Assembly: GCF_002113885.1 (NCBI RefSeq)
Contig: NW_018407435.1
Location: 1,382,958-1,446,957 of the forward strand
Direction: 5' to 3'
DNA from: Mizuhopecten yessoensis
Taxonomy: Eukaryota
DNA: 64,000 nt
This document shows positions 31,377-54,404 of the stretch, piece after piece. The notes below the pieces were generated by a model. That model was not told where the DNA came from, did no database searches, and saw nothing but the letters and a program-made list of their open reading frames with translations. Positions within the stretch are counted from its first letter, which is position 1; the number at the start of each line of letters is the position of its first letter. Made by a program: the position numbers and the translations under genes.

Positions 31377-31765
31377 TTTAATCACATACCTGTTGAATCT
31401 TGTTATAGTAATACAAGCAATTTTCAGACCATGAAATACAACGTTCTGTATTGCACATGTGCAATACGGAATGTTGTATTTACCTACTAGCCGGAACTAC
31501 TTTTTATGGGAATCCCCTTGTCATGGCGAACTGAAGTTCCCGGTATTTGCAAAAAATATCAAAGTTTATAAAATCTTTGTATCGATCTCAACCAAATAAG
31601 GAAGGTATGTGATAAAAGCAAGACACCACACTTGTGTTTTTCTAATGAATCAGAAAGCACGAATTTATTGCGCGGACGCATATATTCACTCGTGTGCTCC
31701 ACTCACTCTTGAATATATATTCGTCCGCGCAATAAACTCGTGCTTTTTGATTCGTTAGAAAAAAC
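31377..31765 (+). mobile_element. Non-autonomous element with an IR-flanked core and an external long hairpin (Crypton-like architecture), copy A
   Basis: ATCACATACCT (31381) and AGGTATGTGATAAA (31603-31616) form an inverted pair, followed by an imperfect palindrome at 31618-31765. A highly similar inverted copy lies at 54008-54404. Confidence 0.75.
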
Positions 31766-34700
31766 GGCCATTTCGTTTCATTGGTACCATAAGTCAAAAG
31801 AATAAAAATATCAGTCTAAAGTATTCAGAAACATGTAGAAATGAGCCCCTTATAACACTACATATTAAGAAATATTAAAAAAAATATTTCCTCATCATGG
31901 TATAACAACTCAGTAGAGCTTTACCTTGTTACGTGACATCATTATAGAAAATATCTGTGTACAAATAAAAGACGGAGAAAACATATGCAAGACCACACAC
32001 TTGTGTTTTTCTCCATCGAGAAAATAAGGTTTTACCTACGTGCTTCCTCTATGCGTATTCCTTACTTCGTATCTCTAGTTATACTTTTATTTGGATGTCT
32101 GCTCCTTGCATCAACAGTTCCACCGAACACTGATTATATTGGTCTTAATTCCAGTAGATTAGTTTAGTTCATCACCCATTACCTCCACAATCTTTTTGTT
32201 AAAAAGTAGTGTGGATGGGAAATCAGAAAACACCCTGATATTTTAAGGAATATCGGAAGTGTGTAAAGTGATACCAATTCTGTATGGATGTGAGGCACAT
32301 CATCCTAACCTGATACCTTACAGTTATCACACACAATCGGAATGAGACAAAAGTTACCCATTGTGCCAAATAATAACTGTGATCTTGGTCAAAAGATATT
32401 GAGTGTCTCAGAGGTAATAAAAATACCAAAAACACACCTTCAGTACATTTTGTATTAAGACAACAAAAGTTTACATTATTCAATATCTTGTACAAGAACG
32501 AATGCATCACAATTTTCAATTTGCAGAGAAAAAATCTTGTGAGGCGTTTATTCTTGTTCAATGCAATCAAATAGTATTTGTTGGAATTGGTTTTTTTTTA
32601 AATCTGAAAGTAAACTGTCATGAGGGATTTTCCTTCGCTTGTCGTAAATAAATGATTTTCTGTATTCACATGTTAGGCAAGCCATTTTACCAGATTTAAA
32701 ATTAATGAAAATGATCTTTCTCATGTAAAATATATCTGAAGTATATCGGAGAATAAAATCTCACCTCAGCCATTGATCTATACAGATTAATGTAACACAC
32801 ACACAGGGGTAATTGCGCCTTCAAAATGTGATAATAGATACAGTATGCCAAAAACGGTGTTAGTTCAAATAGATCTTACATACTGTTGACGGGGAGGAGC
32901 ATAAAACCCTCGATTATGAAATTATAAATTTAAAGAAGTACTTCTAAATTTCAAATAAAAAAAAATGATTTTTTTCTTTTCTATTTTGTGCCGAATTTGA
33001 GATGTTTTTCACTTAAGTTTAAAAGGTGTGTGTTTAATACATCGTTTGTTTCTAAGCATATTTTACGGCATTTATACGCCATTTTGTTAGGGTTCCATGT
33101 CACTCTATTTAAGTGTTTTACAAGAAAGTCTCCTTCTAACCGTAGGTGATAATACAGAACAAGTACTGACCCCACTTTTCCTTTCTGTTTACAATATAAA
33201 TGCAGTCTGGGCGGTAATATATACCCATAGAGACCATCCAGGTGTCAATAACATTCTGTCGTTAAGCTGTATGTGGGGAATTCTATGGCAAGCCAACTTA
33301 ACATTTATCCAAGGAGCAATGTCAGGTCTGTATTTCGACATTGCTCCTTGAATAAATGTAAGGTAGGCTTTCAGTAGAAATCAATAAGATAATTCAAAGC
33401 CTAGTAATTTATATCTTACATCATAATGTTATATATTTCTGTTAATATCTATTTTCAAATTGTGTTAATTAAACCAGAAATAATGGATAAACCATGAGCA
33501 ACGTGCACGCACAACCTTCACGATTTGATGGGTAATAACACCTTAATTATGACCACCGTCTTAACTTAGCGTATCTACTGTTATTCTTAACAGCAATAAC
33601 TCCAGTACACCGGGTGTCCTACATTACAAAACACTATATACATCGTTGTAGGTCATTATTAGGTCTGGTGGTCTTTTTGCTGTAATCGAACATGGAATAG
33701 AATGCATAACATCGCTTAAATGTAATTTAAAATATGCTGTTTCGTAACAAATAACCAGCCCCCTACATGATGGCATTGTCAAAAGAAATTGTAACCCCTG
33801 ATAAGTCATATTTAAAGACCCGATTAAACATCGAAATTTCGTTATGTAATTTATACTTGCAGTTAAGCTATTAAAATGGTAGAAAGCGACGTTAATGAAG
33901 TCAGTAATAAGACATTAAGTTTGGTGAACTATCTTTATAAAGACATCGACATAATGCCTGCTTTCAGGCGAAGTTAACGTCGTTGAGTACTATTTTAATA
34001 ACTAATGTACAAGTTCAACACTTGTATATCAAAATTACACGAACTCTGATCTTTAATGAGAGTCTTTAAATAATACTTATCCGAGGATTGAACTTTCTAG
34101 TGACTATACTATTAAGGGGGGTTTGTTGAGCCTTAACAAAGTGACACAAACAGGCGCATCAATTCTGTACTTATAATTGTTTATCTGTGATTACTTTGAC
34201 CAAACAAATCCATCAACTGAAAATGAGGTGTTTTCTATCAAACGTCATTTTTTGTCAATAACTAAGACAACAATTACCACAATGCAAACAGAAAAAGGCA
34301 TTGAATGTAAACAACGTTATATCAGATCAAATATTATAATTTATATACTTTCGTAGATATTAATACATTTAGTAAAAACAAGAGGTGATATTTAGATGAC
34401 TTATAACATTAAAGTAATACTGACGCAATACGTTAATTTGTTATAATTATAGCTCTGATCAGATGTTTTTTCAAGACATAAAAAAATCTGGTAAAACGAG
34501 TTTGAATTTCTCCCATAAAAACTATGCTTTAGGAGCTTTTGTTTTAAACACATGGTTTCAATCTTTATAACTAATTGCCTATTTATTGACCTATTTCGTT
34601 ACACACATTAGTGAGTCATATAATTTTAATTATTAAATGTTTCAAATTACCATTTTTAATAAAAAAAATATTTTTTATCACAAACAGACAGCCACATTAC

Positions 34701-36107
34701 CTTAACATGGGCCGTAAATAATCATTCCCGAAACTGATTAATTAAACGTCCATTTTCGCAATAACTGTATTTCACTGAATTGCCATAATTAGGATTTCTA
34801 TATTTTATCGTTATTTTTTTAATTTATCATATGTATGAAACCCAGTATGTATCATACATCTTGGATCTATTCAATATTAAATATATATATATATATATAT
34901 ATATTAATGAATGGGCAAAGAAATATGTTATTTTATGTGCATGTAATTGCGTGTTTGCTATTTGTTTATTTGTTAAGTTACATGACAGGTACGTACGCCC
35001 TATGGCCGTTGTACAATAGCTACATAGTGTATGTAGTATCGTCCAAAACAGGTGTAGGAGAATATTTTGTCTCACCTTTTGACAGGTGAAAAGGTCGTAT
35101 GGTCTACTAGTCTGTGGTGTGGTAATTGATTAAACAAGTACGTGCATTGTTTTCCTGACGTGTCTTATGACATAAAGAGTGACGATAACATCTAGTGGCC
35201 CGAAGCTAGCGTTAAGATCAGTCTATCGTCAGGAAGAACTCGGATCGCGATGTGCAGTTTTGGGACGTAAAAACGGTTAATAAATGCATAGTAAGAGGAT
35301 CATATAACGCCGTTAGATGAGAAAAGTACGGAATATTTTTTCCATGACTTTTTTTCCCGGAAACAAAATACATGATTAAAGTGATGATTGTGATGTTATA
35401 CATTCGTTTAGTAAACATGGAATATTTTTTAACCATTTGGTGGTGATGTGTGATATATATTGTTGATTATATACCGTCTAATGTTGTTCTACGTTATTCA
35501 ACGCGAATTCTAAGGACGACAGTGCCCGGATAGGTACATATGGAAGATGAGTAGATTGTTACAGGTACGTCATAATTAATATGGTCAATTTTATTTGACT
35601 GTTTTATAATATTATATTGCATTTGATTTATTTTACAATATTAACAAAAGAATTAGACAATGTATTTCACATTTTAATAGCTTCATTTTTCAAAATATAA
35701 CCATTTTTAATTATTTTTATATATATATTTGTCACCATGGTAAACTTAACGTATATTAATTGGGTAAGATAACCTTACTAGCGAAATAACGGTAGTTTAC
35801 CTTCAAACAAATACACTGGAGAAAGGAAATGCACAACACAGTCATAACTTTATATAAACATTATGTAATATTACCATTTAAAGCAAATGTATAAAATAAG
35901 GAAAGAAAACGCTGGTATTTACAAAAGTCTTGGATCAGTCTTGAAAAGTTTCCATTATTAATGGGTTTTTTGTTGGTATATTATTCTCGCACTAGAACTA
36001 CCACTTATATCGGTTGGACAACCAATTACCATTTTTAACCCATTTTAGATGGAAATATTTATGATTTTAAATTTATTTTATTTTCAGGTCTAGAATTATC
36101 ATATTTA

Positions 36108-39100
36108 ATGGATTACCGTCTGTTGATCCTAGCCTCTTTCCTGTTAGCTGTCGATGTCAAAGGTCACACATTATTTATGCTATCCAGCGACCCGGGACAG
36201 ATACGTCAAAAGGTCCAAACGATATACCACACACACAAGCAGGAAATGACAAGACTGCCAGTGAAATCTCTAAGTAAATACATCGACAAACGCCAGATCC
36301 ACCATTAACGCATATTCAATATATCTTTGTTATCATCATGACTTTGTCATAATCAGTCGTCTAGTGCACTGTTCGGAACCAATCGTGTCCTAACTTGAAC
36401 AAAATGATGGACTGCAATTTTACAATGATTAAACATGATATCAAGCGTTCAGCCTTAACCCATAAAGCAGAATTGATTTCAAGTGAAATATATAGAAATA
36501 TAATACCATTTTGTGAAACGGAAATGTAGAATGTATCGTACATTATATTTTTAAGTAGTGTAGGCCCCAAACAACCAACGTCCGATGAGTTACTACTCTT
36601 CTTTTACTCTGCCCTTTTGTGTTCACTTATTTTTTACTTTCATATCGTTAAATTTGAAACTAATTAATCCAGAAGACATTTAGTTAAATACAATTTTTGA
36701 ACCTATAACATCGTGTCTTATGCGAAAATTTTAACATTATTGGCTGTATTAACTGTTTGTAGCCACGCGGCCGTCAGCCATCCGTCCAAATTTCCACGAG
36801 CAGTTCGTGCTACCGAGCCGAGAGATGATGGTGAGGAAGCAAACCCGTCTAGCTGGTCTGTCGCTAGGGACCATCAAACAGATATGTACCAGGTACCCTG
36901 ACCTAGTCACACTCAGAATATAGAAATATTGTCAATTCAGTTTTAAGCATCGTAGAAAAATGAACACCAATAATATCAAATGTGTCGTAATTTCGAATAA
37001 GTACAAAATATGTATTGCAACAGTTTGTTGTCAAAAAGGTGGGGTCAATTCCTATGCTTAAGTTCTCATATGGTCGGCATTGTCTCAATTCGGCAAAATC
37101 AGACCCTAGGGAGCTGAGACCATCATATTCAATACTGTCTGCAGTCTGGCAACGTTATTGCAAAATATGGAGAACAAAATAGTTCCGTTGGCCAAAATTG
37201 GACCCCACCTTTCTGTTGATTCCAAATATACAATGAAATAATTTCAGTAATGGTAATTCGTTTTTTTTTACTTTCTGTTAAGTACCGGAAGTACTGTTTA
37301 TGAGTTGCTAGAAAAGCCTGGATGGCAGGAAGCCCTCAGGACTGAGTTTGGCCACGACTGTCAGGACCTGAGTGCTAACCTTACGTGTAATGCACTCAGT
37401 CGGTACCGAACCATAGATGGCTCATGTAACAATCCGTTCCAGCCCACGTGGGGTATGGCGGGAACTCAACAAACACGCTACCTCCGTCCAGTCTACAATG
37501 ACGGTAAGAACTACTATACTGATTTATTTAATGTATGTTAATGCAAAAGAAAGGAAAAATACAAGAAAAATCCACGCTTATCAAGACCTATTTCATCCTG
37601 TCTTTTTTCCTTCATTACATTCGATCAACAATATAGCTCAAACATGATTTATTGATTGTTAAATGTAACAAAACGGTATACTTACTACTAACATATCAGT
37701 TTATTGTACATGCAGATTGGACAATTGAATCTGCCAATAAAGAAATGCATCGCGCAGGTATTTAGTGATATAAGCGACAGTAAAATACCCCCTGATATCT
37801 CCTTGTGTTACAGGTATAAATTCCCCACGTCTTGTGGGAAGGGACGGGATACCCCTCCCCAGTGCCCGGATGATCAGTAACATCGTCCATAGCTCCAAAG
37901 GGTTCGTTCGCCAGGACTGTCATCTCTCAGCTATGGTCATGCAATGGGGACAATTCCTTGACCACGACATCGTCGGTACGCCTGTGCTCAAAAGTAAGTA
38001 TAAACATGTCTGCAACGGAAATCACATAAACGTAGGTCTACTAAGAACCGAGTTATATCATTTTTTATAAAACCCTCAACATACTGCTTCTTCAATGATC
38101 TACTTATTAACGTACAGGAAATTATCTCTAGCTTAATCTGAGAAAGGGCAATGGGAACTGTCAATGCTTGGATACAATATACAATTACACGGGAACTTTT
38201 ATATGATGCACCTCGTTATAGTTACCACCTCGATACGCCTTATATTTCTTCTTTTACACTTCCTGTATATGTTTCGATGTTATGCAAACATTTTGATGGA
38301 CAGATGACCACATCAAGACGAGTCGTACTTTTGTACTGATAAATCGAGCTGCCTGATTAACAATTAGTCATAGACCAAGCATTTCAACTATTTTTCTTAT
38401 GTATGAGGGTTCCTTATTTTTGACTTCTCTGTGTTTTACTTGTAGAAGATAATGGTTCATCATACGAGTGTTGCGAGGCTGATTCTTCCTTGTGAGTGCA
38501 CTTTTCTACTAAACGAAAACGTCGAACGGCAGTTGGGGCATTGACCCTATAAATTATTTTATGGTTTTCGAAAAGAAGTTAAACAGTTTTTGAATTGGAA
38601 TAATTTTATTTGTAAGCCCGTATTCTAATCTTAAAATAGCATGTTGAAATCTTATTTTCAGTGAAGGTTGTTTTCCTGTCGATATCCCCCCTAACGACGA
38701 CCATTTTGAAGGGAAATGTATGAACATGGTAAGGTCCGCACCAGCAGTGGGACCTGACTGTGCTATAGGTTAGTACATGGCGTGTATATGAGCAAAGGAC
38801 CTGACTAAGTGTACGACATTTACGAAGATGACAAGGACTAAATCCATTAGTGGGACTGGAATGCACTTTAATAAGAATAGGTCGTTTGAGAACCTGATAA
38901 TGTTAGCAGTAGTACACACCCAATCACACGTTGAACTGCTTGTATTGTGTGGGTTCATTTTAATATCTCAGATTAATATAATTAAACTACGGAAGTTGTT
39001 ATTAAAGTCTTATGGTTGATAGTTATACGCACATAACAAATAATTTGATTTTAAATTAACCAGTAGGCTACACCTCAAATTTTTCCAATTTATAAATAAA

Positions 39101-42100
39101 GGGGTTACACGCACCACCCGAAAGGTTCCAACAGCAGTGTAGACCTATTAGGATTTCCGACGGCTTGGCTCCTTGTATCCCCGATGGGTCCTAGAAGGAC
39201 GAGACAGATGTATGCAGTGTAATATATTTATACATAGTTGGCATACCGTATCTATTACCAGCTTTTATAGGTGCACTCACCTGTGTATGTGTATGGTATG
39301 TTCCTCTTTCCTAAAGTGCCATGGATAAAGAAGCGACCCGCAGTTATTATCATCATTATGTGCAAAGCTGTACAGAACGGTATAATCATGTTTTGGTCGT
39401 TACAGGTGCACGGGAACAAATGAACAAGGTGACGTCATACATAGACGCGTCTGCTGTCTACGGTTCTTCTCGGGAGGAAGAGGCCTTCTTGAGAGCTTAT
39501 AATAGAGGTATCGTTTGCACGCCTAATCGTTCCCATCATGTAATGAAAACATTGCCAGACCCCTTTACGAGATTAAAAAGGCAAAACTTGTTTATGCATG
39601 TCAAACAAGGTATTAATGGTACCTTCTTTCGCTACATTTATATTTACATTTATTTGTTTGTTTATTGGAGGGGTTGTAAGGTCTTTCCTTTTGTTTACTG
39701 GAGGGTGTGTAAGGTCTTTCCTTTTGGTTATTTGAGGGGGTGTAAGGTCTTTCCTTTTGTTTGTTGGAGGTGGTGTAAGGTCTTTCCTTTTGTTTATTTG
39801 AGGGGTGTAAGGTCTTTCCTTTTGTTTATTGGAGGGGTGTAAGGTCTTTCCTTTTGTTTATTGGAGGGAGTGTAAGGTCTTTCCTTTTGTTTATTGGAGG
39901 GGTGTAAGGTCTTTCCTTTTGTTCATTTGAGGGGTGTAAGGTCTTTCCATTTTTTTATTGGAGGGAGTGTAAGGTCTTTTCTTTTGTTTATTGGAGGGGC
40001 GTAAGGTCTTTCCTTTTGTTTACTGGAGGGTGTGTAAGGTCTTTCCTTTTGGTTATTTGAGGGGCTGTAAGGTCTTTCCTTTTGGTTATTTGAGGGGGTG
40101 TAAGGTTTTTCCTTTTGTTTATTTGAGGGGGGTAAGGGCTTTCCTTTTGTTTATTGGAGGGGTTTAAGGTCTTTCCTTTTGTTTACTGGAGGGTGTGTAA
40201 GGTCTTTCCTTTTGGTTATTGGAGGGAGTGTAAGGTCTTTTCTTTTGTTTTTGGGAGGGGTGTAAGGTCTTTACTTTTGTTTATTGGAGGGGTGTAAGGT
40301 ATTTCCATTTGTTTATTGGAGGGAGTGTAAGGTCTTTCCTTTTGTTTTTGATGATTTCATTTCCCGTTCCTTGTATGTTGACGTTGTGGTCTGGATTTTG
40401 TTCTATTTTAATTGTTTTTCTGGTGTATCAACAAGGAATGTTAAAGGAGGGAGACAACCGACTGCTGCCACCTAGCGGCAGAGACAACTGTATACAGAGA
40501 ACCCCAGCTGACGTGTGTATGACTGCTGGTAACGTGTCGAATCATTAATTCTTAGTGTAAAAATGTCACTGATCAAATACAGCAATATTTATTTTTTCTA
40601 TTGATACAAATAATATTTTGTTATTCTTGTAAACACACGGGTAAACTTACTGACGAAACTTTTTTTGTAAGTATGATATTTAAACAATTACAACAACAGT
40701 ATAACATGTTAAATAGTAATGCAAGTCAATATAACATATTCTTTATGCGTCGTTCAGCAAAATGACATTTGTCCTCGTAAAAAGTGTATTGTTGCCATCG
40801 TTCCACGTTGAAATGTGCACAGTTGATAACCTACTATTATCCATTCAGAGAATATGTTTTGTTTTTTCTATTTTTCTCCAGGGGATGACCGCCCCAATGT
40901 CGTGCCTTCATTAGGATCAATACACACTTTGTTCATGAGAGAACACAACCGGATAGCCGCCATGCTCGGCGTTCTGAATCGGTTCTGGGACGACGAGCGG
41001 ATTTTTCAAGAAACTCGCCAAATAATGTCAGCCCTATTACAGCATATTACTTATTACGAGTATCTGCCGTTAATCCTCGGCAAACGGATTATGGAATACT
41101 ACAAGATTCTTCCCACAACTGAATACAAGGCAAACATATACAATACGTCGATCAATGCCGGAATAGCAAATGTCTTTGCTGTGGCAGCGTTTAGATTCGG
41201 TCATTCACAAATTCCTTCAATTCAAACGTTTTTGGGACCAAGAGAATCTTACCGGCATGACTTCCGGATCGAGACTACGTATCACAGACCCTTCTTCGCA
41301 CAATTCAAGAATGGACAAGGAACGGAAGACGTACTGAGGTGGCTCGTTAAAGACTCACAACCGGAAACAAACAGGTAAACTTTTTTTTTGACAAGAATAA
41401 CTCATTATTTGTAAGAGCATGAGTTCCTGCTCCATTCACAGTCTGGAGCGTGCAGATGCAGAGAAATCCCATTCGAGAATCGAATCAAGGGAGTTGCTGG
41501 AAATCTTTTTTCTAAAACCTCAACCACCTTTCATTACTATAGCACATGTGAACTCAAAGATACTGTTTCGTATCAATATCATTTGCTACACAAGGAATAC
41601 CGTCATAAAATGTTTTACATTTTTGAGAATTACTACGAGAAACGTGCAGATGACCCAATACCTGTTCTGCTGAGCATGTCCTTTAATTATGCAACATACC
41701 AGAGTAATGATCCATTTGTCTTTGTGCACTTAACAACATGTATACGTACTTCCATGCTACACATCGAACGAAGCCTTAGCTCTGTAATGTCAAAGCACGG
41801 ACTTAGATCTAATTCCGTGGTCAAAGTAATGTGTACTACTTGTTCCGTTAACAGGGTGTTTGTCCGGGGCGTACGGGATCAGTTATTCTTAAGGAACAAC
41901 GTCAGCCTTGATCTGGCGGCTATCAATATTCAGAGAGGGCGTGACCACGGCGTACCACCGTACAATGCTTGGCGGAAATGGTGTGGCCTAGCCCCGGCTA
42001 GGCACTTCGGGGTGGAACCCGACGGACTTATCCACCACACGATAGCCTCAGCCAGACTACTACAGCGGGCCTACCGGTACACGACTATTTTTGTATAATA

Positions 42101-43399
42101 ATTTTAAAAGCTTACAGATAATGATAATCCATCATCGCCTTGATGATAACCATATATCATTCTAGTAGAATGTTTTCTCGTTGTAATTTCGGATGCTTCT
42201 TGAATAGAAAAGTGATACTTGAGAAAGTAATCGCCGGAAACAGACTCCATGTTCATGTTCGTAAAGCAAGATTACAAGTATTTGGGAACGGCGAAATGTG
42301 TTATCATAAAACAAACTTGAAGGGCGATCAATATTCTAGAATATTTTTGTCTAATGTTTATTCGGTATTACATTGAGATATTTACGAATTCATTGAACGA
42401 CGAATCGTCAAGCATCGTTGGTTAAATCTCCTCGACTCCGTCCGCTGTACCAGTTTCTATACTTTGACAGTGATCCGGACGACATCGACGTCTTTCCCGG
42501 GGCTATATCAGAACGCCATTTGAAAGGGGCCAGTGTCGGACCAACATTCGCCTGTATCCTAGGTTACCAGTTTCAGGAGCTCAAGCAGGGAGACCGGTTC
42601 TGGTACGAGCGAGCACATCCCATCACAGGTTTCACAGAGAGTAAGTCAAGTCGAGCCTCGTACAAGGATTTAGAAATGTTTGTTGTCATGGAATCTGACC
42701 TATATCTCAATGTGGTTTGGTTGAGGTTTGCTAGATCTTGTCTAGTGCCGTCATTTTATCCTTAATATACTATTAAAATAGTGTTCTGCCGCAATGCATT
42801 GAATCTTATATGTGATCGGTTGAAACACTATTGTAGTGTTTGTAATTGAGAAAGACTTATTTGCGTATTTGTTCTGTAAGTGCTCTCTGAGGGTGTTCCC
42901 TATAATCATAAATGACGACAAATAAAACATCAAAAACTAAAGGTGTGAGCTCATGAGACCAACTCCACCTACAAATGATGCTCAAATCTGGTTTCCTTCT
43001 ATTCACAGGACAGCTGCGGTCGATACGAAGAATGAGGCTATCGAAAATTCTTTGTGAGAATTTCAATATTACACCGTTACAGAAAAATGTGTTCCTACTT
43101 CCAAATAGCAAGTAAGTTGATTAATGTCATTCATTAAGTTTTGTTCGAATTGATGTTACAGGTACCAGATTTGGTACCGCCATACACTTGCAAATGCAAC
43201 GTTTCAAATTGTTGTGATGTAAAAGGTGCAACAGATACGATAAAATATATGTTCGAACTGATAATATCATATCATAACATTATGCAATACTTTCAGGGTT
43301 AAGTCATCACACCTGGTGCCATGTCACTCTCTTCCGGACCTTGACATCCGCGCCTGGCAGGACTACAGATACGGGGATTCACCATCCGACGGGAAGTAG
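36108..43399 (+). CDS. Secreted animal heme peroxidase (peroxinectin/chorion-peroxidase-like), 13 coding exons, about 711 aa
   Basis: Exons 36108-36273, 36763-36892, 37283-37503, 37814-37993, 38446-38491, 38662-38768, 39406-39507, 40436-40528, 40882-41374, 41855-42076, 42471-42640, 43009-43111 and 43297-43399 are all GT-AG with compatible phases. Motifs: signal peptide [37 protein letters not shown] (distal His), [26 protein letters not shown] (proximal His), [16 protein letters not shown]. The first two exons are less certain than the rest. Confidence 0.93.
39655..40345. repeat. 31-32 bp minisatellite (GGAGGGGTGTAAGGTCTTTCCTTTTGTTTATT) in a peroxidase intron
   Basis: About 21 head-to-tail units with no unique spacers. 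Confidence 0.93.
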
Positions 43400-46300
43400 A
43401 CGACTATTTGCTAAAGACATAATTCTGTTAATGTTTGGCATCTGTCGAAATTCTAATCTATGTGGGATGTTTAAGAATGCATAGTATATCAACAAATGTT
43501 TAACTTTTGAGAGGAGAAGTTTTGTACAACCGGATTGACGTACAGAGGGCTGATAGGAAGCACTCCTGACTGTGTCGGTACTACTGTGATTCGTGTAGAA
43601 GCCGAATCTATGCTAGAGGACGCTTACTGCTTCTTGTTGACATATCGACATAAATCCATAACGATCGAATGAAATGCCAAGGGTTGGTTTCATCGTGAAC
43701 TGTGTAAATTGGTGATGTGCAAAAAAAGATGAATTTGAAATGCAAAACTAAGTGGAATTCTTGTTATGGAATCTGACCTTCTACTTCCTAATACAAATTC
43801 AAAGAATGTTGTTTGGATGATATTTGCTGGATCCTGTCAAGTGCAGTTATTTCAATCTGCATTGACTATTGAAAAAATGTTCTACCACAAAACACATCAT
43901 GTTTATGTGGTCTTTCTATAATATGGAATCGCTCACTAAGAGGACGAGGTACATTTGTATACATGAGGATTGCTTGCTGGAAACCCTCTGAGTAAAGGTT
44001 GAGAATCGATTACTGGTTAAAGTGATTGTGGTATGGAATTACAAAGGCTCAATTCAAATGTCATTCACTCCCCGTTTATAATTGCTAAATGACATGCAAG
44101 ATGTTAACAGGGTGGAAAGCCCTCGGCTGCTAACGTGACGCTCCTTCTCATGGACTTATAATCAACATACGTCTTTACATTGCAGCTTGGTCAGCGGTTA
44201 TCAACACAACAATGACAAGCCTTTGACCTTGCTTTTCCGCTCTGCAAGTAGTGCAGGATGTATGACGCATCGCATTTGTCAAGATCTGACACATACAGCA
44301 AGAATACCCCGCTCCGTCTGGTCAAGGTGTGACTGCAATATATACATTTAGATAATTTACCACATATTGACGGACAGTGTGATGGGAAGATTGAGCGGAA
44401 GTTGTGTCGTGTTTCTTGATGCATTATTTACCCCTATAGGTTGACACTTTTGACCACTTTAAAACTACATGTATATGTTAAAGGGCACTTATCTTATTGG
44501 ATCGCATTCAGTAATTGGATACCTGGAATACCTCGATGCATTTTGTGTTTAAATGTTTCCCTTAGAGAGCAGTAACATGACGTTATGTATAATATTGACT
44601 AATCAGAAGTTTCTCTTTAAATAGTGTTCGTCCAGAGAATCTTTACATTTATATGAACATTTAAAAAAAATATTCTTACAGAAGTATCAAAATTAAATTT
44701 TATCAAGATACCTTAAAGGAATATCTTATATATTTTGTACATGGTGTAAATAGTATGGGCGAGTGTTTCCTGTACTGACGTCCGCTTCTAGCGGTCGCTC
44801 TCACCTGAGTTTTTTTTTTATTGGAAGTAACGACAAAGTGAATGATCGACCCAAAGCGCCTGACACTTTGACCCCGTCCTGGCCTTATCTGTCTGGTATA
44901 GCGATCAATATCAATGTCGGAAGTTATAAAACTTACCTGATAGGGTTATTATATCATATTTTTACAATGTATTATGTGACAGATGAGATCGACAACAGAT
45001 TTAATCACGTGAATGCATTTTTTTTTTTTTTGCATTACCACTCTGTCATCACCGACAAAACTTTCCAATAATAATACGAAGAAATAAAAGACACAGTAAT
45101 TTCCTATTTTTAATTGATACTGCTCAATAAATAATATTGGTATCTACTGTTGCACAGACATGTCAGCCTAAAGCTAATATATGAAACATAACTTTATCTT
45201 ACGCAAATTAAATCTTTGCACAGACAATATGCTTATTGTAAGATTACTCATTTACAAACTATTACGTATTACTACTACCCCAAACACCAATTCACACATT
45301 TCTAAATGAACTTTTTAAATCGTCTTCTATTACAGAATGCATAAGAAAATATATAATATTAGATTCCGAATTTGTTGTTGGCTTGTGTGATCATAGCTGA
45401 AGTTAAATATACATGTTTCTCATTGTATATGAAATTGCGTGTCGTTGCTCATTTGCTGACACTGCAGTTGTATTGTCCACACCGAGCATCACGCTCCAAA
45501 TCAACACAAACAATCACTGCATTATTTCTCTCAATGTCAAACCAAAAGTTCACAAATCAAAGTCGACGAATTACTAGGGTGAAAAATATATCACTTAAAA
45601 ATGTTTGCTATGACAATGGTTTGTATTTCGTGCTTCAAGTCAAAATCCACTGCGAGGGTCGCAAACATTGTAATAACTGTCTGGACCACACTATTTTTTC
45701 TTTACACTCTACAAACATATCATTTATATATCTCTTGCCACTCCAACATCAGAAACCCTAATGTCAGTCATGACAATGGGTCAAAAGCCACAATAAGTAC
45801 GTAAGGATCGACATAGATTCACTTAACTTGTGTCTCCTCGCGGTATTCTCGTTTCCCCCACTTTTTAAGAGTTAAGAAAATTGTGAATATAAGCGGAAAG
45901 GGGCAAACCAATTATAGTCACTTTCACCCGACAGGTCACACAGGTAAGGGTTAGGGTTAGAGTTATGAATGTGATATATAAAAACTGTAACTTTTGGATA
46001 ATGAAATTAGTTAAAGAACATTTTCAATAGATAATCAACATTAACCAATAGCACCACTTGAAATTCGGAATTCATCAATGCAGTTGTACGCGATACAATA
46101 ATTACTAAATCAATTTTTACATATGGTCTGTCATAAACATTACATTTAATAACAACTCGATCACCTTTCATTCCCAGATGATTGTCTTCAATGCCAAGGT
46201 CATAACAAGGGGGTCCAATACCGAATAATTGTAATGCCCCAGTCTCAGAACTAATGATTGCTAAAGTCGAAACAATGTAATACAATGTAATAAATACCCT

Positions 46301-47184
46301 GATAGTTCGATGGTTGCTAATTATGTCTAAACATTTTCTTTATGTCGGTAAATAGTTTATACATCTTTGTATAGCACACCCAATGGAATGTTTACGTGTG
46401 AGAACAAAACTCATTCTGACACCTTCGTCACTTAAAAATGAAAAGAAATATAAATAAAATTAAAAAAAAGCATTAGAAACAAAATGCACAGAATAGTTTT
46501 AAAAATCAGTTCGATTTCATAAATTAAACATGTATTGAGTAAGGGACTGAGTGTTTGATAACCCTCGTATCTTGATGCCCTCAGAATTAAAAACTAAAAA
46601 CATTCTTACGCTACATAATATAATCATTTAAGTATGATGATTGTAAATCTAAAAAGAAAAATATATGGAAATAAGGATTTGTTGATCAAGCATGATTCAA
46701 ATACTACAATAATGTTTTATGAGGCTATTGGAAATAAAATACAAGAAAATATCTTAATAGCAATGTTAAACAGGTATTCAATAACATCAAGAAACGAAAC
46801 GGAAGACAGCCTCTAATCATAGTTTTATAAGTTTTTCACAAACTTTCTTCTGTCTCTGACGTTTTTTAGACAATGTAAACAATGTCTATTTAATAATTAT
46901 CGTAATACACTTCTTGAAAACCTTTTCAAGGGTCTCCATATATATCTATCCTTTGTTCAGAGTTTTATCGATATTGCGTTTGAATTATGTATTTTTTACG
47001 CTTCGGTATTCTATTGCTGTTTTTCTTAAACAATATCTGGTTTTGTCCATATGATAACAATATAAAAGTTTTCCGTCATTGTCTTAAGATTTCCAGTGAC
47101 ACAGCATTCATCGCACTTTGCAGTACTAATACAGTGACGAAAAAGATCCACCTGATAAGTACTAGGAGAGAAAATCAATTTACA

Positions 47185-48744
47185 TCACGCACTGTAATAC
47201 TGTAGACGTTTGACTTCGTCACCATTCACCGCCCAGAGGACATGGTTCTTGTCCAGGCCAATTGCCTGTGCACTTAGCTCGTCAGTGAACACCGTCCTGA
47301 TGAACTCCCCACCAGAACTGACGAGAAGGACGCTGTGATTGTTACAGTCGGCAATGAGAAGATTACCAGCAATGTCAAAGGTCACATCCCAGGGGTCAAA
47401 TACAGCTCCTGCTGCTGGTTGGCCATCTCCTTTGTATCGGAACAACTCTCCAAACTCTTTGTCCATGACAAGAACTTGCAATTTACTATTATCGTCATAG
47501 CTCTGCCTTTCTACCACAGCCACGTTCTGTGTCAGCCGACATTCTGCTATTTTCTGTGGCAAACGAACCATGGATTGTCCAGGTGTCTGCGTTTTCGTAC
47601 TAAGGAGATTTTTTCCTTGCTGGGAGAATTTGGTCACCCTTTGCGACATTCCTACCAGGATTTGATTCCCTATGGTAACACACAGGCATATGGGCTTGTT
47701 CTTGCAGTGGAATCGCAGATTGGGCGTCCCCTGTGTATACTCCATGATGCTTGAATCGGCGTCAGAGCACACCCAAATGTTCCTTGTTCTGGGTGATATG
47801 CTGATATCTGTGATTCTCACGGTGAACTTGAACTGCCTCCGTACAATACCTTTCTTGTTGAGCAGTTCCAGAATGTCCGCATATGAAATCCAAATTTCGT
47901 CGCTACCGTTGGGACATATCTTATTGCCTATTCGTTTTGTGTGAAATTTGCCCATGATATTGGTTTGGGATAGGAGCGTGTACTTCGAGGCAGGTCGCTT
48001 TATAGCTGACGCCCCTGACTTTGGTCGTGCAGACGTTGGCTCCTGCACTGGTGGTGGTAGCTGCGCTTTAGACTCTGCTTCATCGGTAGACGACGGGTCG
48101 TTGGGGACAAGAGTCCCTAACGCTTGTTCTAGATAACAGCGGTAGTTTGTCGGTGCTTCAAAGACTGCAGTATTCAAACTAGGGCTTTCAGGTAGGTTCA
48201 AAGCGAGGCTTCGGAATGTCTGTCCAGTGTCATATAATGCAAGTACAGATGTGTCTTGAAGCTGTGTTTTGCAGTCGTGAAGTTGTTTAATGAGTCCCTC
48301 GTGACTGTCTTCTAGACGTTTCTTGTAGTCTGTCATTAGGCGGATGTTGTCTTCCTTTATATTTCGATACTGCGACAAAGATTCAGCGATCAAAACGTCA
48401 ACTTCCTGCTTCAGCTTGATCCCTTGTTCTTGAACCTTTGTCTTGAGCGTGTCAAAGTACGTCGAAGTTTCCGCCATTTGTTTTTCTATTGAGCAAATTT
48501 CTTCTTTGATATTGGGCAGTTTGGTATTTTCAACTTCATCGATAAATTCGATCATTTCTAATTTCTGCTTTTCGGCTATATCATTTACCTCAGTCAACTC
48601 GTGTCCCTTGTGACGAGTAGCAACACATTTCATACACGCAAGTTCACTGCAATTATCACACAAGAACTCTACGATTTTCCCTTTATGATGAATGCACGTG
48701 CTCTGTCCTTTCTTGCGAACAGGTACTTGAACTGAAGCGGCCAT
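47185..48744 (-). CDS. RING-less TRIM-like protein (B-box2, coiled coil, NHL-type beta-propeller), copy 1, 519 aa
   Basis: CIHH...FLCDNCSELACMKCVATRHKGH B-box, a heptad-rich helical region, and FDPWDVTFDIAGNLLIADCNNHSVLLV NHL repeat. Intronless CDS. Confidence 0.92.
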   Translation of the reverse strand: MAASVQVPVRKKGQSTCIHHKGKIVEFLCDNCSELACMKCVATRHKGHELTEVNDIAEKQKLEMIEFIDEVENTKLPNIKEEICSIEKQMAETSTYFDTLKTKVQEQGIKLKQEVDVLIAESLSQYRNIKEDNIRLMTDYKKRLEDSHEGLIKQLHDCKTQLQDTSVLALYDTGQTFRSLALNLPESPSLNTAVFEAPTNYRCYLEQALGTLVPNDPSSTDEAESKAQLPPPVQEPTSARPKSGASAIKRPASKYTLLSQTNIMGKFHTKRIGNKICPNGSDEIWISYADILELLNKKGIVRRQFKFTVRITDISISPRTRNIWVCSDADSSIMEYTQGTPNLRFHCKNKPICLCVTIGNQILVGMSQRVTKFSQQGKNLLSTKTQTPGQSMVRLPQKIAECRLTQNVAVVERQSYDDNSKLQVLVMDKEFGELFRYKGDGQPAAGAVFDPWDVTFDIAGNLLIADCNNHSVLLVSSGGEFIRTVFTDELSAQAIGLDKNHVLWAVNGDEVKRLQYYSA

Positions 48745-49231
48745 AATGGTTTTGTAAATGTTCTTTCGTTTTGGACAATTGTAGAAAGTTAATTTGTTTA
48801 GCTCCTGTTTGCGTTCATTGTCATTCGGTTTGTTCCTGAATGTTCAACTGTTGTTCATGGCAAACTTCTGAAAATAAAGGAAAAGAAAACCATGCCAAAA
48901 TCAAATCTGAAAGATGAACGTATACACACATATGTGATTGAGCATTTAAAATTTGGTAATAGTTACTGTAAGCCAAAAATGAATGACACTGCATCATACA
49001 GCTGTTTCGTCCTTTTAGACTCATCGGTGATGCTAAAGACCAAAACATTGGAAATCACCCTCTCCCAATTTTACATCTAGATGGGCTCCGTACCACGGCC
49101 AAAAAATGTAATTTAACATTGAAAAGTGAGGGGTTTTTCGGCATGACTAATAGTATAGTTTTGAAAAAACATTTCGAAAAAAAAACGTACCTCGGGGGAC
49201 TTTTATGAAAAGTAATAAAGACGAAATGACA

Positions 49232-49350
49232 AAATATTCAGCGGGGCTAGGCGGGACTCGAACCCCGGCCTTATTATGCTATCGCTCTAACCGACTGTGC
49301 TACCTGATCAAGGGAACGGTCCTGGCCAAACTGCGCTTCAGTTATACCCA
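49232..49350 (-). mobile_element. tRNA-derived repeat (SINE head or tRNA-like LTR)
   Basis: Minus strand GGTAGCACAGTCGGTTAGAGCG (A-box) and GGGGTTCGAGTCCC (B-box), with no complete cloverleaf. Confidence 0.55.
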
Positions 49351-50619
49351 TAGCTATATCAAGGGGGGTGGGGGGTACTCAAAATACGAAAAGACTCACT
49401 CAGTTGAAATGGTTATGTATTTTATCACACCGCCATTTTTAGCCCATTTTCATAAATATTAAGCCGTCAGAATGAATATTTTGCGATTTCCCTTCAATTA
49501 AATGTATTGGCGATGTTTAAATGTTACGTCATAGTTAAAAGCATATTTCATTTTTTCCTTCATTCTGCATATGTTTTGGAACACTTTAGACATTGTTGTT
49601 TTTTATTTTCATTTTTTAACCTTAATTTTAAGTACCATTGAAAAGTCCGATATTGACAAAATTGCCAAATGATGCAAACAACGTTTTCAAAAAAGGTGCC
49701 TCTTTTCCCGTATTTCTAGTGTCCATATATGCAACAAGTTGGGCTGATTCAGTTGATGGTAGCCACGTAGCTGAAACCTATTCTAGCACTCATTTCATAA
49801 AATACTAGTTAATCTATATATTATCTTTATGTTTGTAAAGGTATAAAGGATGTCATAGGAACGTTGCGCGTTGCACTGTATCCTACAGATGTTTGGGAAC
49901 ACGTTAAACATTAATTTTCATTATTTTGATCGTTATTACTGGTGATTGGTTTCTATTGGACAAAATGTCTCTTTGGCGCATTAAATGTTTGGTTTGTTCG
50001 GCTTTCTGATTGGTCCAATAGCTGCTTCCTACTTTGTATTTCTCAGAGACGTTATGACGTCAAAAGTTGGATGAACTGCTGGTGAATTTCTTAACGTGTA
50101 TTTCTTTTCAAGAACAGATCTATCCTTGATATCTTGTTCGTGAATACTTGAATTCATGATAATGAAACCTTTTTATACATCACTGCTTTTTGGTTAAGAT
50201 ACTGATAAGATCTTATTTGACCTACGTGACTTATTTTAAGCAGTATTTAATGAGAAATAAGCCGCTGTACAAATACAAGTGAAAAATAACGAGCTTCGAG
50301 GTTATGTTGACTTATTGTAAATATGTAAGATAGTTAATATAGAAGTCCAAGGATATTTAACATGGAAAAACATATATATATTTAAAAAAAACTGACTTCA
50401 TTATTTCTAAATCCTTTTCGCGAGATTTTATGTTGTGTTTATAATTTTTTATTATATAATATAAGGCTTCTGCAGTGCAATAAAGGGGTGCAATAAAATT
50501 GATATTGAACGTGTGCAATAAAGATGCAAATGAGCGCGCGACACCTCGGGAACTAGGTCGTATTCCTACGCACTACTACTACTACTACTACTACTACTAT
50601 AGTATAGGCTTACTACAAC

Positions 50620-52119
50620 ATGGCTGACGTAAACATTGGGGATTCTGTTCGAATTGGCGGCAAAGGTAGGGGCACAGTACAAGAACTTGTTCCAATGGGA
50701 TTTGCAACAGTTTTAATCGAGGGAAGTGATATTGAGATTGACTTGCCAGGTGATCGGTTAGAGCCAATACCCCAGACTATGACTCAGTCGTCCTCGCTAC
50801 CACAAAAGCAGACGACACCCAACCAAACTCAAAGGTTTGTTCCGGTCCAACAAACGGAAATTGGGTCATTCATTGAACAACAATCAAATAAGAACACTCT
50901 ACTGAAAACGTGGAATGACATGAAAGTATTGAAAGCCTTTTTCGAAACTCCAGAAATCAACGAATCCCGAAGTATTCAAAACATACCCCCTCCCGAATTA
51001 TCTCCGTTGCTTTCCCAATTTTTCATGAGTGTCCGAAAAGTGGACGGTTCTGAATATGAACCAAACAGTCTCAGATCTATGATGTCAAGCTTTGATCGCC
51101 AGCTACGCCGATTTAATTATGGTCATGCTATTATTACTAGTCCCCTGTTTGCCCAGGTTAGAGAAGTGTTGAAAAGTAAACAAAAACAGTTAAAACGCGA
51201 TGGAAAAGGTAACCTTGACAACCGTAGTGATGCTATCAGCGACGAGGAGATCGACGTTTTGTGGAGAAAAGGTCAATTTGGAACTCAAAACCCTGACGCT
51301 ATTTTACAGACACTTTGGTTTTTCAATACAGTACATTTTGGTTTACGGGGATCAGCGGAGCATCGCGATATGTGCTGGGGGGACGTTACACTACAAAACC
51401 ACACTGACGGACATGAATATCTAGAGTTTACGGAAAGACAAACAAAAACCAGGACAGGGGAGAACACCCGTGATGTACGCAAAGTAAAACCAAAATTGTG
51501 GGCAAACACTGAAAATCCCGAAAGGTGTCCTGTTCATGTTTACAAATGCTATGCAGATATGAGACCTACGACTTACTGTAAAGGATCAGATCCATTTTAT
51601 ATAGCTACTACAACAAAAAGCTCACCTGGAAGTCATGAGACTTGGTTCAAGCGCCAACCCGTTGGTATCAACAAGCTAAAATCCATGATGCAACGTGCCA
51701 TAAAGGGAGCAGGAATCCAAACTGACAAACACTTGTCAAATCACAGTGCGAGGAAATATCTTGTCCAGAAATTGAACGATAATAACATCCCCGCTAACCA
51801 TATAATGCAAATTTCTGGTCACCGAAACATTTCTTCTATTAATAATTATTCACACATCAACACGAATCAACACAAAGAAATCTCCAAAATACTGCACGGA
51901 AATCCAACAGCACCTGAGACCGGATGCAACACAACATCACTGACACAACAATCAATGGCGTGTAACCAGTCAACTTCCTCTGTTGTCAGGGTCCAGGGCG
52001 GTTTCCAAAGTATCTTTTCAGGTGCTGTCACAGGAGGAAACATACAAGTTCATGTTTACCAAGGACCTCCTCTGAAAAAACGCGCCCGTGTTATAGAAAG
52101 TGACAGTGATTCTCAGTAG
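50620..52119 (+). CDS. Tyrosine recombinase with a DUF3504 (ZMYM/KIAA1958/QRICH1-like) domain, Crypton transposase, 499 aa
   Basis: VRKVDGSEYEPNSL is a DUF3504-type motif. The catalytic set is intact: HFGLR (R), TKTR (K), NHSAR (HxxR), SGHR (H), NNYS (Y). C-terminal NLS PPLKKRAR. Intronless. Confidence 0.92.
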   Translation: MADVNIGDSVRIGGKGRGTVQELVPMGFATVLIEGSDIEIDLPGDRLEPIPQTMTQSSSLPQKQTTPNQTQRFVPVQQTEIGSFIEQQSNKNTLLKTWNDMKVLKAFFETPEINESRSIQNIPPPELSPLLSQFFMSVRKVDGSEYEPNSLRSMMSSFDRQLRRFNYGHAIITSPLFAQVREVLKSKQKQLKRDGKGNLDNRSDAISDEEIDVLWRKGQFGTQNPDAILQTLWFFNTVHFGLRGSAEHRDMCWGDVTLQNHTDGHEYLEFTERQTKTRTGENTRDVRKVKPKLWANTENPERCPVHVYKCYADMRPTTYCKGSDPFYIATTTKSSPGSHETWFKRQPVGINKLKSMMQRAIKGAGIQTDKHLSNHSARKYLVQKLNDNNIPANHIMQISGHRNISSINNYSHINTNQHKEISKILHGNPTAPETGCNTTSLTQQSMACNQSTSSVVRVQGGFQSIFSGAVTGGNIQVHVYQGPPLKKRARVIESDSDSQ

Positions 52120-52481
52120 GCCTAATATCCAACACATGTGTTTTCGGTTTCCGACGACCTTCACAGTGCGCGCGCTCTTACACTGTTCATGACGTCACCG
52201 ATGAAAAAAAACAGTTTTTTTCCGAAGCGAAAAAAAAGAAGTCATATTTTGTAAACTTTTATTATTTCAATTGTTATCACAATTAAAATGATCGTTAAAA
52301 GTAAAACTGTTGGCCATTTATTATTCTGATAAAATTCTGCGGACTACTTTTGTTAGCGGAACATGCTCTCAAATTAGTATATGTGATGCGTCCTTTCTCG
52401 TCGTCATTGCATATAGAGACGTTAGTATTGAAACCACTTATGTAGGTAGGTTTCTCGAATTATATAATAAATAGAATCTAA

Positions 52482-52610
52482 CACTCGTGTTCATGTTATA
52501 TTGAATTTATTGAACTCGTATATTAATTTCATATGAAACTCGCCAAAGGCTCGTTTCATATGAAATTAATATACTCGTTCAATAAATTCAATATAACATG
52601 AACACGAGTG
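52482..52610. repeat. Long hairpin/cruciform: 63-bp arms, AAA loop and two 2x2 TC/TC internal mismatches
   Basis: Arms were paired by hand around the centre at 52546. The only mismatches are where CTCG occurs in the same orientation in both arms. Confidence 0.92.
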
Positions 52611-54007
52611 CTAGATCCTCTATATATTTTACCTAAACACCGGAATTAGCAGTTATATGACATACCTTTACAGTAGAAATCTAGACCGTTTTTTGGTGTC
52701 TAAATGAATAATGTTCACGTTTAATAGGCTGATAATCTATTCATTTTAATTTTAGTAAGTTAAATCCTGAATAAAGACGAAGATGTAAGCATTATTTTTC
52801 TAGTCCAGGTATATGCAATAAAGCAGGTTACAAAATCATCAATTAACAATATATATAATGTAATGCAAGAAAACCTAATTGGGGATTTCCACTAAACACG
52901 AAGTAGGATTTCTCTACTTTCTAATTTCATATTATTACTGCTATTTTCATTTCGAGGGAAATCCACATTTGTAATTGCCCTAATAATATCTTTCAGAAGA
53001 TGACTACTAGATTTCACGTAGTCATTTTCGCTACGAAATGATAATATAATGTTTTTGCCAGTTTCATGTCTTCGTTATAAATATGAGATAGATTAGCCGT
53101 TCTACTTTCGTTTTAAGTTAACATACCACAACGTATGATTATGTGCAGAAAAATCAGTTTTTATGCTGAAATAAACACCAATTTCTCTTACACACATAAT
53201 ATCCCAGTCATACATCTATCTATGATAGCTACATGTACTAACATTTCATGTAATTTCAAAATATTTCAGAATACATTGGTATGCTAAATACCTGAAAGCA
53301 TTATCATATATATGTACATACATAACACACACAAAGATGTCTGACATGAAGTGTGTAATTCAGTCAGTATATTTGTTGAATGTGAACACGATCAATCAAA
53401 TCTTACCTGATAGCATTAAGTATTCCTTTTCAAGAAACAGAGCTGAGTATACATACAAGCGTGACTTTGACCCTGGACTTTGTCATACTGCTACGGTGTA
53501 AACAACGACTGATACGCCCCTTCTCGACTGATACGCCCCTGCACGACTGTTGATAATGACATAATACATGCTATCGATTCTCGGAACTGCTAACAACGGG
53601 CATACGGAAGCGGGGTGGTAACATAGCCCTAACGGAGACACGTGGTTTAATCTTTGTTTAACTTCTCTAGAATTCTCCTTCTTATCATTCTTATTATTTT
53701 TATGTTATTACTGTAGTTTACTTTTGCCATTGAAGAAGGCCAGGATGTCGAAATATTCGGAACTAGGGCGACATTTATTATATTTTTATCATTTTGCCCA
53801 TCGGAAATCATCTGTTGTTTATTATGTAAATTGATTCAATTCACTTTATAAAAATGTCTGTAGTTGATTGATATTAATTAATATTATAAGAAGTTGAGAT
53901 GTTTGCGCATTTATGACATATTTTCCAAACCGAAGTAATTAAAAAAAACTTTTAGGTAAAAAAGCAATTAAAATTCTATCACGTGCCTACAATGTCATAC
54001 ATAAAAT

Positions 54008-54404
54008 ACATATGCAAGACCACACACATGTGTTTTTTCTAGCGAATCAGAAAGCACGAGTTTATTGCGCGAACGAATATATTCACGAGTGCACGGATAC
54101 GTCCGCGCAATAAATGAGTGCTTTCTGATTCGTTAGAAAAACACAAGTGTGTAGTCTTGCTTTTATCACATACCTTCCGTATTTGGTAGAGATCGATACA
54201 AAGATTTTATAAACTTTGATATTTTTTTGCAAATACCAGGAACTTTTTAGTTTGCCATGACAAGGGAATTCCCATAAAAAGGTAGTTCCGGCTAGTAGGT
54301 AAATACAACATTCCGTATTGCACATGTGCAATACAGAACGTTGAATTTCATAGTCTGAAAATTGCATGTATTACTATAACAAGATTCAACAGGTATGTGA
54401 TAAA
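54008..54404 (-). mobile_element. Non-autonomous element with an IR-flanked core and an external hairpin, copy B
   Basis: Perfect 14-bp inverted pair TTTATCACATACCT (54162-54175) and AGGTATGTGATAAA (54391-54404), with a hairpin at 54014-54160. Reverse complement of 31377-31765. Confidence 0.78.

Follow-up and report, generated by a model that had tools for sequence, protein, structure and literature searches.

Which enzyme moves a repeat that encodes none of its own? The question is raised by a 64,000-nt stretch of the genome of the scallop Mizuhopecten yessoensis (contig NW_018407435.1; hereafter the window), in which two short non-coding elements share their layout, i.e., inverted repeats (IRs) and a long hairpin at one end, with a nearby transposon that encodes a tyrosine recombinase (YR; the transposon is hereafter called REC). 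The original prediction regarded the two as passengers similar to MITEs (miniature inverted-repeat transposable elements), moved by this or a related YR; our analysis supports a related enzyme, while the neighbouring REC is probably not the mobiliser. The two passenger copies are probably non-autonomous, MITE-like members of a DUF3504/CryptonA-like YR transposon group that would be mobilised in trans by a related YR, likeliest one whose elements have TTTATCACATA ends, and not by the neighbouring element with TTTATTATATA ends.

Alignment of the two copies with each other and with further genomic copies confirms that they are real, mutually homologous members of one non-coding family of ~408 bp with the same layout as REC. 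Our searches covered the 988-Mb scallop assembly, and the family count of more than 1000 obtained with copy 1 as the query (1011) is one of first-look candidates, 40 of which were scored; all 40 were full length, with 90-94% identity. The limits of the unit, TTTATCAC...GGTCTTGCATA, follow from 31 aligned copies, each taken together with 80 nt of flanking sequence at either end. From its 5' end the unit consists of TTTATCACATACCTG, a core of ~210 nt, AGGTATGTGATAAA, the spacer A, a hairpin of ~160 nt and the terminus ATA-3'; its 5' end reads TTTATCACATACCT and its 3' end ...GCATA-3'. The core contains the small palindrome TATTGCACATGTGCAATA, and the hairpin, of the type GCAAGACC, runs from GCAAGACCACACACTTGTG to CACAAGTGTGTGGTCTTGC. 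The mean identity of the sampled copies to their own consensus is 96%.

Copy 1 (31378..31765, + strand; 92% identity to the family consensus) is truncated at its 3' end. It has the 5' IR TTAATCACATACCT at 31378-31391, the 3' subterminal IR AGGTATGTGATAAA at 31603-31616 and a hairpin that starts at 31618, all on the + strand; family homology ends at 31765, without the last ~30 nt of the 3' arm of the hairpin and without the GCATA terminus. In copy 2 (54011..54404, - strand; 93% identity) both ends are intact: positions 54391-54404, read as their reverse complement, give the 5' end TTTATCACATACCT, the 3' IR and the hairpin occupy 54016-54175, and the terminal GCATA is the reverse complement of 54011-54015, with ~20 nt deleted at the hairpin apex. 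The positions originally proposed for the two copies were approximately right and are corrected by these limits and by the truncation of copy 1. A solo fragment of 29 nt identical to the passenger 3' terminus (31984..32012, - strand; TATGCAAGACCACACACTTGTGTTTTTCT on the + strand) is located 220 bp away from the truncated copy.

The proposed IR consensus TTTATYAYATA is real, with the correction that the left IR of copy 1 carries a T-to-A change against the family consensus. It has seven matches in the window against 0.85 expected, five of which are ends of the three elements; the other two, at 2439 and 10709, lack a hairpin and resemble background. The exact 11-mer ATCACATACCT has four matches in the window, only at four IR positions, against 0.06 expected. 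The window has a GC content of ~33-44% and is eukaryotic.

The hairpin had been placed outside the element, which did not hold: in the 31 passenger copies and at 29 REC loci it is the 3'-terminal module. This bears on the explanation of the hairpin as an independent palindromic MITE that landed beside another repeat and resembles REC by chance. Taken alone, the hairpin does look like a palindromic MITE, short AT-rich IRs are easily found in a genome of ~35% GC, and background accounts for two of the seven TTTATYAYATA matches in the window. The explanation is nevertheless already contradicted and hardly credible: core and hairpin form one unit with common outer limits in all 40 scored copies, empty sites remove the whole unit together, and the combination of IR and hairpin base is ~160-fold more frequent than its control. 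The genome search for that combination, TATRTRATAAA-N2-14-CACTYGTG, gave 478 matches against 3 for the reversed control, and the 478 include hybrid subtypes bridging families. Nor is the passenger a classical MITE of a DDE transposon with conventional terminal IRs and a target site duplication (TSD), as its 3' repeat stands ~165 nt from the end and no TSD is present.

The absence of a TSD, as originally claimed, is demonstrated at four empty sites in paralogous sequence, which align gap-free with the joined flanks, three for the passenger (L030, 43/43 nt; L016, 39/40; L024, 37/40) and one for REC (L041, 44/44). These are insertions in local tandem repeats, from which TTTAT...CATA or TTTAT...CTCTA was removed and the flanks joined; there was neither duplication nor deletion at the four sites, save for a 1-nt T ambiguity at the boundary. 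Both elements insert at TAT-N5-^-TNTAT, and their flank logos coincide: at one and the same upstream offset, T is found in 81% and A in 75% of passenger copies (n=31), and T, A and T in 90%, 95% and 75% of REC copies (n=20-29), with T-N-T-A-T directly downstream in both. No constraint is seen on the base 5' of the insertion; the 3' flank begins with T in nearly all copies. The only feature resembling a direct repeat is the 5'-TTTAT of the element against the TNTAT of the 3' flank.

Elements also stand head to tail, with ...CCTCTA joined directly to TTTAT..., in the scallop loci L055 (~1749-1761) and L063 (reverse strand, after GTAAGATCCTCTA) and on the metagenome contig of L079 (~2384), and the partners sometimes belong to different subfamilies. 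L079 starts with TTTATCACATAACC and ends with GATCCTCTA, followed directly by a second, slightly different copy, so that its junction reads CCTCTA plus TTTATCAC. When the ends are joined, the 5' IR extends the hairpin palindrome across the joint between ...CTA and TTTAT..., in REC as a perfect 16-bp duplex.

The element with which the passengers share this insertion signature, REC, is an autonomous YR element of 2175 bp (50448..52622, + strand). Its limits were obtained by searching the assembly with the hairpin region and with the protein: it starts at 50448 (TTTATTATATAATATAAGG) and ends at 52622 (...GCTAGATCCTCTA), boundaries that are common to 29 loci, including many copies with internal deletions that keep exactly both ends; this makes the hairpin the 3'-terminal part of REC, inside its limits. 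All features of REC are on the + strand. The 5'-terminal IR TTTATTATATAAT (50448..50460) is followed within the next 100 nt by three GTGCAATAAA repeats. The 3' subterminal IR ATTATATAATAAA (52459..52471) is complementary to the 5' terminus, and the terminal hairpin (52472..52622; DNA fold dG -62 kcal/mol) has C-tc-G / C-tc-G bubbles and ends in ...GATCCTCTA.

The single open reading frame (ORF) of REC (50620..52119) encodes a recombinase of 499 aa with DUF3504 and C-terminal Phage_integrase domains (Pfam, 1.5e-33 and 3.7e-10, respectively) and no reverse transcriptase. The catalytic R243, K276, H375, R378, H401 and Y410 do not vary among 17 aligned relatives, which come from molluscs and cnidarians. 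The protein is 99% identical to an NCBI-named Mizuhopecten yessoensis protein, and the sole match in a PDB sequence search was the DUF3504 domain of QRICH1. At least eight copies with an intact ORF are 99-100% identical. Judged by these copies, REC is a young, live transposon that was recently amplified.

Three side observations concern the REC sequence. A (TAC)9 microsatellite at 50573-50600 closely precedes the ATG, within the 5' leader, and its length is probably variable, since the open frames of other copies have 506 rather than 503 codons. The GTGCAATA repeats occur in the first ~100 nt as three direct copies in REC (50471-50535) and in L079 (~95-160, 2400-2480) and as an inverted pair at consensus positions 71-89 of the passenger, and may serve as accessory binding sites. 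Many homologues of the protein are on public contigs of 2.1-2.4 kb, about one element length, which is expected from collapsed repeats and is no evidence of circles.

Two more YR families of the scallop genome, with 60% and 43% protein identity, share the layout. The 60% family starts with TTTATCACATAAC (TTTATCACATAACTGG) and has the 3' IR GTTATGTGATAAA, the hairpin and the end ...GATCCTCTA (GTAAGATCCTCTA). The 43% family, which has intact ORFs of 627 aa, starts with TTCTCCCAC (TTCTCCCACCC), and its 3' IR GTGGGAGAA is followed by a spacer, the hairpin and the end GATTCTA. A terminal/subterminal IR of 12-14 nt and a hairpin are present in all families; TTTATYAYATA fits the passenger, REC and the 60% family, and the 43% family has another repeat. 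The four scallop 3' modules measure 165-181 nt, have stems of ~60-75 bp and fold at -52 to -88 kcal/mol (DNA parameters).

The same layout recurs in other organisms. A protein-profile scan yielded 80 metagenome loci, presumably of invertebrate DNA. At no fewer than 16 of them the YR match is followed downstream by a hairpin of 41-67 bp, always in gene orientation (15 at 330-1010 nt past the protein match, L101 at 37 nt); a comparable upstream hairpin was found at only three loci. The stretch that directly precedes the hairpin has its complement upstream of the ORF, for example at L069 (13 nt), L102 (16 nt) and L116 (12 nt). At coral-type loci, the 3' module of ~185 nt is often the only DNA still alignable between elements. 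The cis-code originally proposed as shared within a YR system is supported by the layout in three YR families and at these metagenome loci, by the common target and by ends that agree closely between the passenger and one of the families.

That agreement concerns the 60% family, in which 14 of the 15 terminal nt match the passenger (z = 3.4). Between the passenger and REC, 16 of the 18 nt of TATTGCACATGTGCAATA, around GTGCAATA, match at a similar offset (z = 4.3). For the terminal and GTGCAATA matches, the observed score was reached by only 2 of 300 shuffles. The hairpin arms behave differently. Local alignment of the passenger and REC hairpin modules is no better than dinucleotide shuffles (z = 0.4), and that of the passenger with the 43% family is not significant (z = 0.1). 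The ordered motifs described earlier for the arms therefore reduce to the IR, the box at the hairpin base and the CTCG blocks. Within that set, ACTCG and the base box ACACTYGTGT, common to the passenger, REC and the 60% family, are real; GAATTTATTG, listed with them, is private to copy 1, as the family consensus reads CTCATTTATTG at that place. Since the hairpin alignments are not significant, our case does not rest on arm sequence.

These comparisons also bear on whether the neighbouring REC is itself the source of the enzyme for the two passenger copies. REC has the layout, the flank signature and the TNTAT target of the passenger, and it is the only family seen with both many intact, near-identical ORFs and TTTATYAYATA ends. 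However, the IRs of REC and the passenger disagree at the two Y positions and past position 11, their hairpin modules cannot be aligned, and another family, the one with 60% identity, has nearly the passenger's own IR. Moreover, the passenger copies are ~96% identical to their consensus (92-93% for those in the window) and the REC copies 99-100%, which indicates that the two bursts differ in age. Because of these differences in IR, hairpin and copy identity, REC was probably not the mobiliser, and we regard it as a quite improbable source of the enzyme.

A different enzyme altogether would be required if the 408-bp family, and perhaps the YR elements too, were rolling-circle elements of the Helentron/Helitron2 type (HINE), with Rep/helicase supplied in trans and the recombinase as captured cargo. 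Helentrons have asymmetric IRs of 8-15 bp, a 3' palindrome of 5-10 bp ~20-60 nt from the end and a preference for TT (PMC3627910, PMC4067079). The likeness to Helitron2/Helentron and HINE/DINE-1 elements extends to asymmetric IRs, a 5' T, the lack of a TSD, tandems and abundant gene-less derivatives (PMC3627910, PMC4067079, PMC7492417). Head-to-tail tandems are typical of rolling-circle elements too, non-autonomous Helitron2 elements can carry captured genes such as Fanzor1 (PMC3627910), and oyster HINE families are not tied to any autonomous Helentron (PMC7492417).

Several points in fact weigh against a YR as the mobiliser. The layout fits the Helentron definition, i.e., a short 5' IR with its partner subterminal, just upstream of a 3' hairpin, and a T at the 5' end, insertion beside T and the absence of a TSD fit Helentrons as well (PMC3627910; PMC4067079). 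Rep-like sequences are present in the scallop genome (72 candidates). Among the scallop YR loci read, none has the passenger's own hairpin (GCAAGACCACACACTTGTG...), and the passenger hairpin does not align with that of REC. The 60% family, whose ends match best, had only degenerate ORFs in the two copies read, and two copies of the 43% family differ by seven non-synonymous and no synonymous changes, which is uninformative on selection.

Other evidence favours a YR. The three YR families (43-60% identity) and at least 16 loci of other organisms keep the gene, its orientation, the hairpin and the catalytic residues, which would not be expected of passive cargo across such divergent loci. The coding members that have this layout encode a YR only and not Rep, helicase or endonuclease. 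Their hairpins of 100-165 nt, with conserved CTCG/CTCG bubbles, contrast with Helentron palindromes or stems of 5-10 bp that lie 8-35 bp from the end. The base of the 5' flank is unconstrained, and the target is TAT-N5-^TNTAT, not TT or oligo-T. YR candidates in the scallop genome exceed Rep candidates (1077 vs 72). Three Rep-bearing loci (L065-L067, 30 kb) have no such hairpin, with longest arms of 25 nt, which is weak evidence because only one of them covers the 3' side. We therefore consider a rolling-circle origin unlikely. As the sequences stand, they argue strongly for a YR rather than a Helentron Rep/helicase as the mobiliser, which falls short of proof because the search turned up no autonomous partner that carries the hairpin of the passenger itself.

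The structure of the hairpin suggests how such an enzyme could recognise it. All 2x2 internal loops in the four scallop hairpins are tc/tc in a C..G context, and one of them always lies 3-6 bp below the apical loop. Since each 'tc' faces another 'tc' and is flanked by C and G, CTCG stands on both arms in the same direction; the ratio of CTCG to CGAG on the coding strand is 15:1 in the four scallop modules and 49:3 in the downstream hairpins of the metagenome loci. When 12 modules are aligned, compensatory double changes are seen in 17 of the 46 predicted pairs; most rows keep the 'tc' as it is and without a partner, the AC...G bases beside it do not vary, and the blocks CAC-TC-GTTG and AAC-TC-GTGA are kept in nearly all rows. 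Covariation of the stems around a 'tc' that stays unpaired means that the pairing is maintained and the mismatches are maintained too. The two strands are not equivalent: the bubbles present T.C mismatches on the coding strand and CGAG/CGAG, i.e., tandem G.A mismatches, on the other, and the bottom strand folds more stably by 0.9-3.2 kcal/mol in 12 of 13 modules.

Individual copies depart from this pattern. At 52606-52607, REC in the window reads GA in place of the TC of most copies, which closes the bubble nearest the base, and similar bubble-closing flips occur in passenger copies. Flips of 2-3 nt, TC to GA or TCA to GAG, turn a bubble into pairs in single copies (L002-L030). Such flips would be expected of occasional arm-to-arm templated correction in a folded hairpin. 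Parvovirus-like flip/flop replication of the hairpin is ruled out, as the bubbles are oriented one way with respect to the gene (49:3).

The group shares a cis-architecture that comprises a 5'-terminal IR, subterminal repeats of the GTGCAATA type and a 3'-subterminal IR abutting a terminal hairpin of 100-165 nt, the covarying stems of which are broken by invariant C-TC-G opposite C-TC-G, with a terminus ...C(T/A)TA-3'. We infer a mechanism in which the YR acts as the transposase, with a circular intermediate and a folded-DNA substrate. The YR would excise the element as a circle, in which the joined ends would read ...CCTCTA followed directly by TTTATTAT... Either as an extruded cruciform or in a folded, single-stranded form, the long asymmetric palindrome may then serve as the recombination site and set strand and polarity, as does an integron attC site or a CTX-phage attP hairpin. 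Integration would take place without duplication, immediately 5' of TNTAT and 5 nt after TAT, and integration beside the end of a resident copy would give rise to the head-to-tail tandems. We tentatively extend this idea to a widespread clade of animal Crypton-like YRs that might recombine through a long folded-DNA hairpin, cruciform or single-stranded, with G.A/T.C blocks setting strand and polarity; such a eukaryotic counterpart of integron attC/CTX-phage integration is possible, and we hold it with considerably less confidence than the assignment of the two copies to a YR group.

The hairpins of integron attC and CTX-phage attP(+) are folded single-stranded substrates of bacterial tyrosine recombinases. 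The scallop modules resemble them in the imperfect hairpin, the strand-asymmetric unpaired features, the association with a YR and the conservation of structure over sequence. They differ in the eukaryotic host, in a hairpin that is 2-3 times longer and in having 2x2 internal loops, not extrahelical bases. What can be read in the scallop are the structural prerequisites, i.e., covariation, asymmetric bubbles and gene-locked orientation, and single-strand use is suggested by analogy.

With CryptonA, the scallop elements share a single YR ORF, homologous to DUF3504 and with its catalytic set intact, and the lack of both a reverse transcriptase and a TSD, as well as non-autonomous derivatives that far outnumber the autonomous elements, as in CryptonI-1N1_RPro and the medaka families (PMC3212892). 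What sets them apart from Cryptons is the presence of IRs, of a long conserved 3' hairpin with bubbles and of a specific target, TAT-N5-TNTAT. According to Kojima and Jurka (2011, PMC3212892), animal Cryptons are without terminal repeats of either the direct or the inverted kind, and a 2026 paper on DUF3504 CryptonA elements treats Cryptons as lacking inverted repeats and could not define the ends (PMC13465315). The published description of Cryptons includes short terminal direct repeats of 4-6 bp as recombination substrates. The scallop IRs depart from that description and not from the enzyme-based definition, and we found no description of this end architecture for Cryptons in the literature searched, which did not include Repbase reports.

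Elsewhere in the window, three tandem intronless ORFs of 518-521 aa encode B-box/NHL (TRIM-like) proteins (47185-48744, 55970-57535 and 62089-63645, all on the - strand), and REC and passenger copy 2 are located between the first two of them. A hairpin at 33278-33382 with 46-nt arms of 83% complementarity is unrelated to the modules described here, as it has no CTCG blocks and no adjacent IR.

Among the classes of eukaryotic DNA transposons, none is less well understood than the Cryptons; their ends have been described as featureless, and to our knowledge their transposition has never been reconstituted. The Crypton recombinase is ancestral to the vertebrate genes ZMYM2-4, QRICH1, KCTD1 and KIAA1958. 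The conserved end module, the precise junction, the target motif and the mismatch blocks make Crypton movement testable at the bench and give these poorly understood elements a defined recognition site on which tests can be made. The scallop genome supplies young and intact candidates, namely the at least eight near-identical REC copies, together with an abundant short passenger. Our results further indicate that assigning gene-less mollusc repeats to Helentrons by their layout alone may mis-classify them. If the proposed mechanism is true, part of the bivalve HINE repeats that have no Rep partner would be moved by tyrosine recombinases instead.

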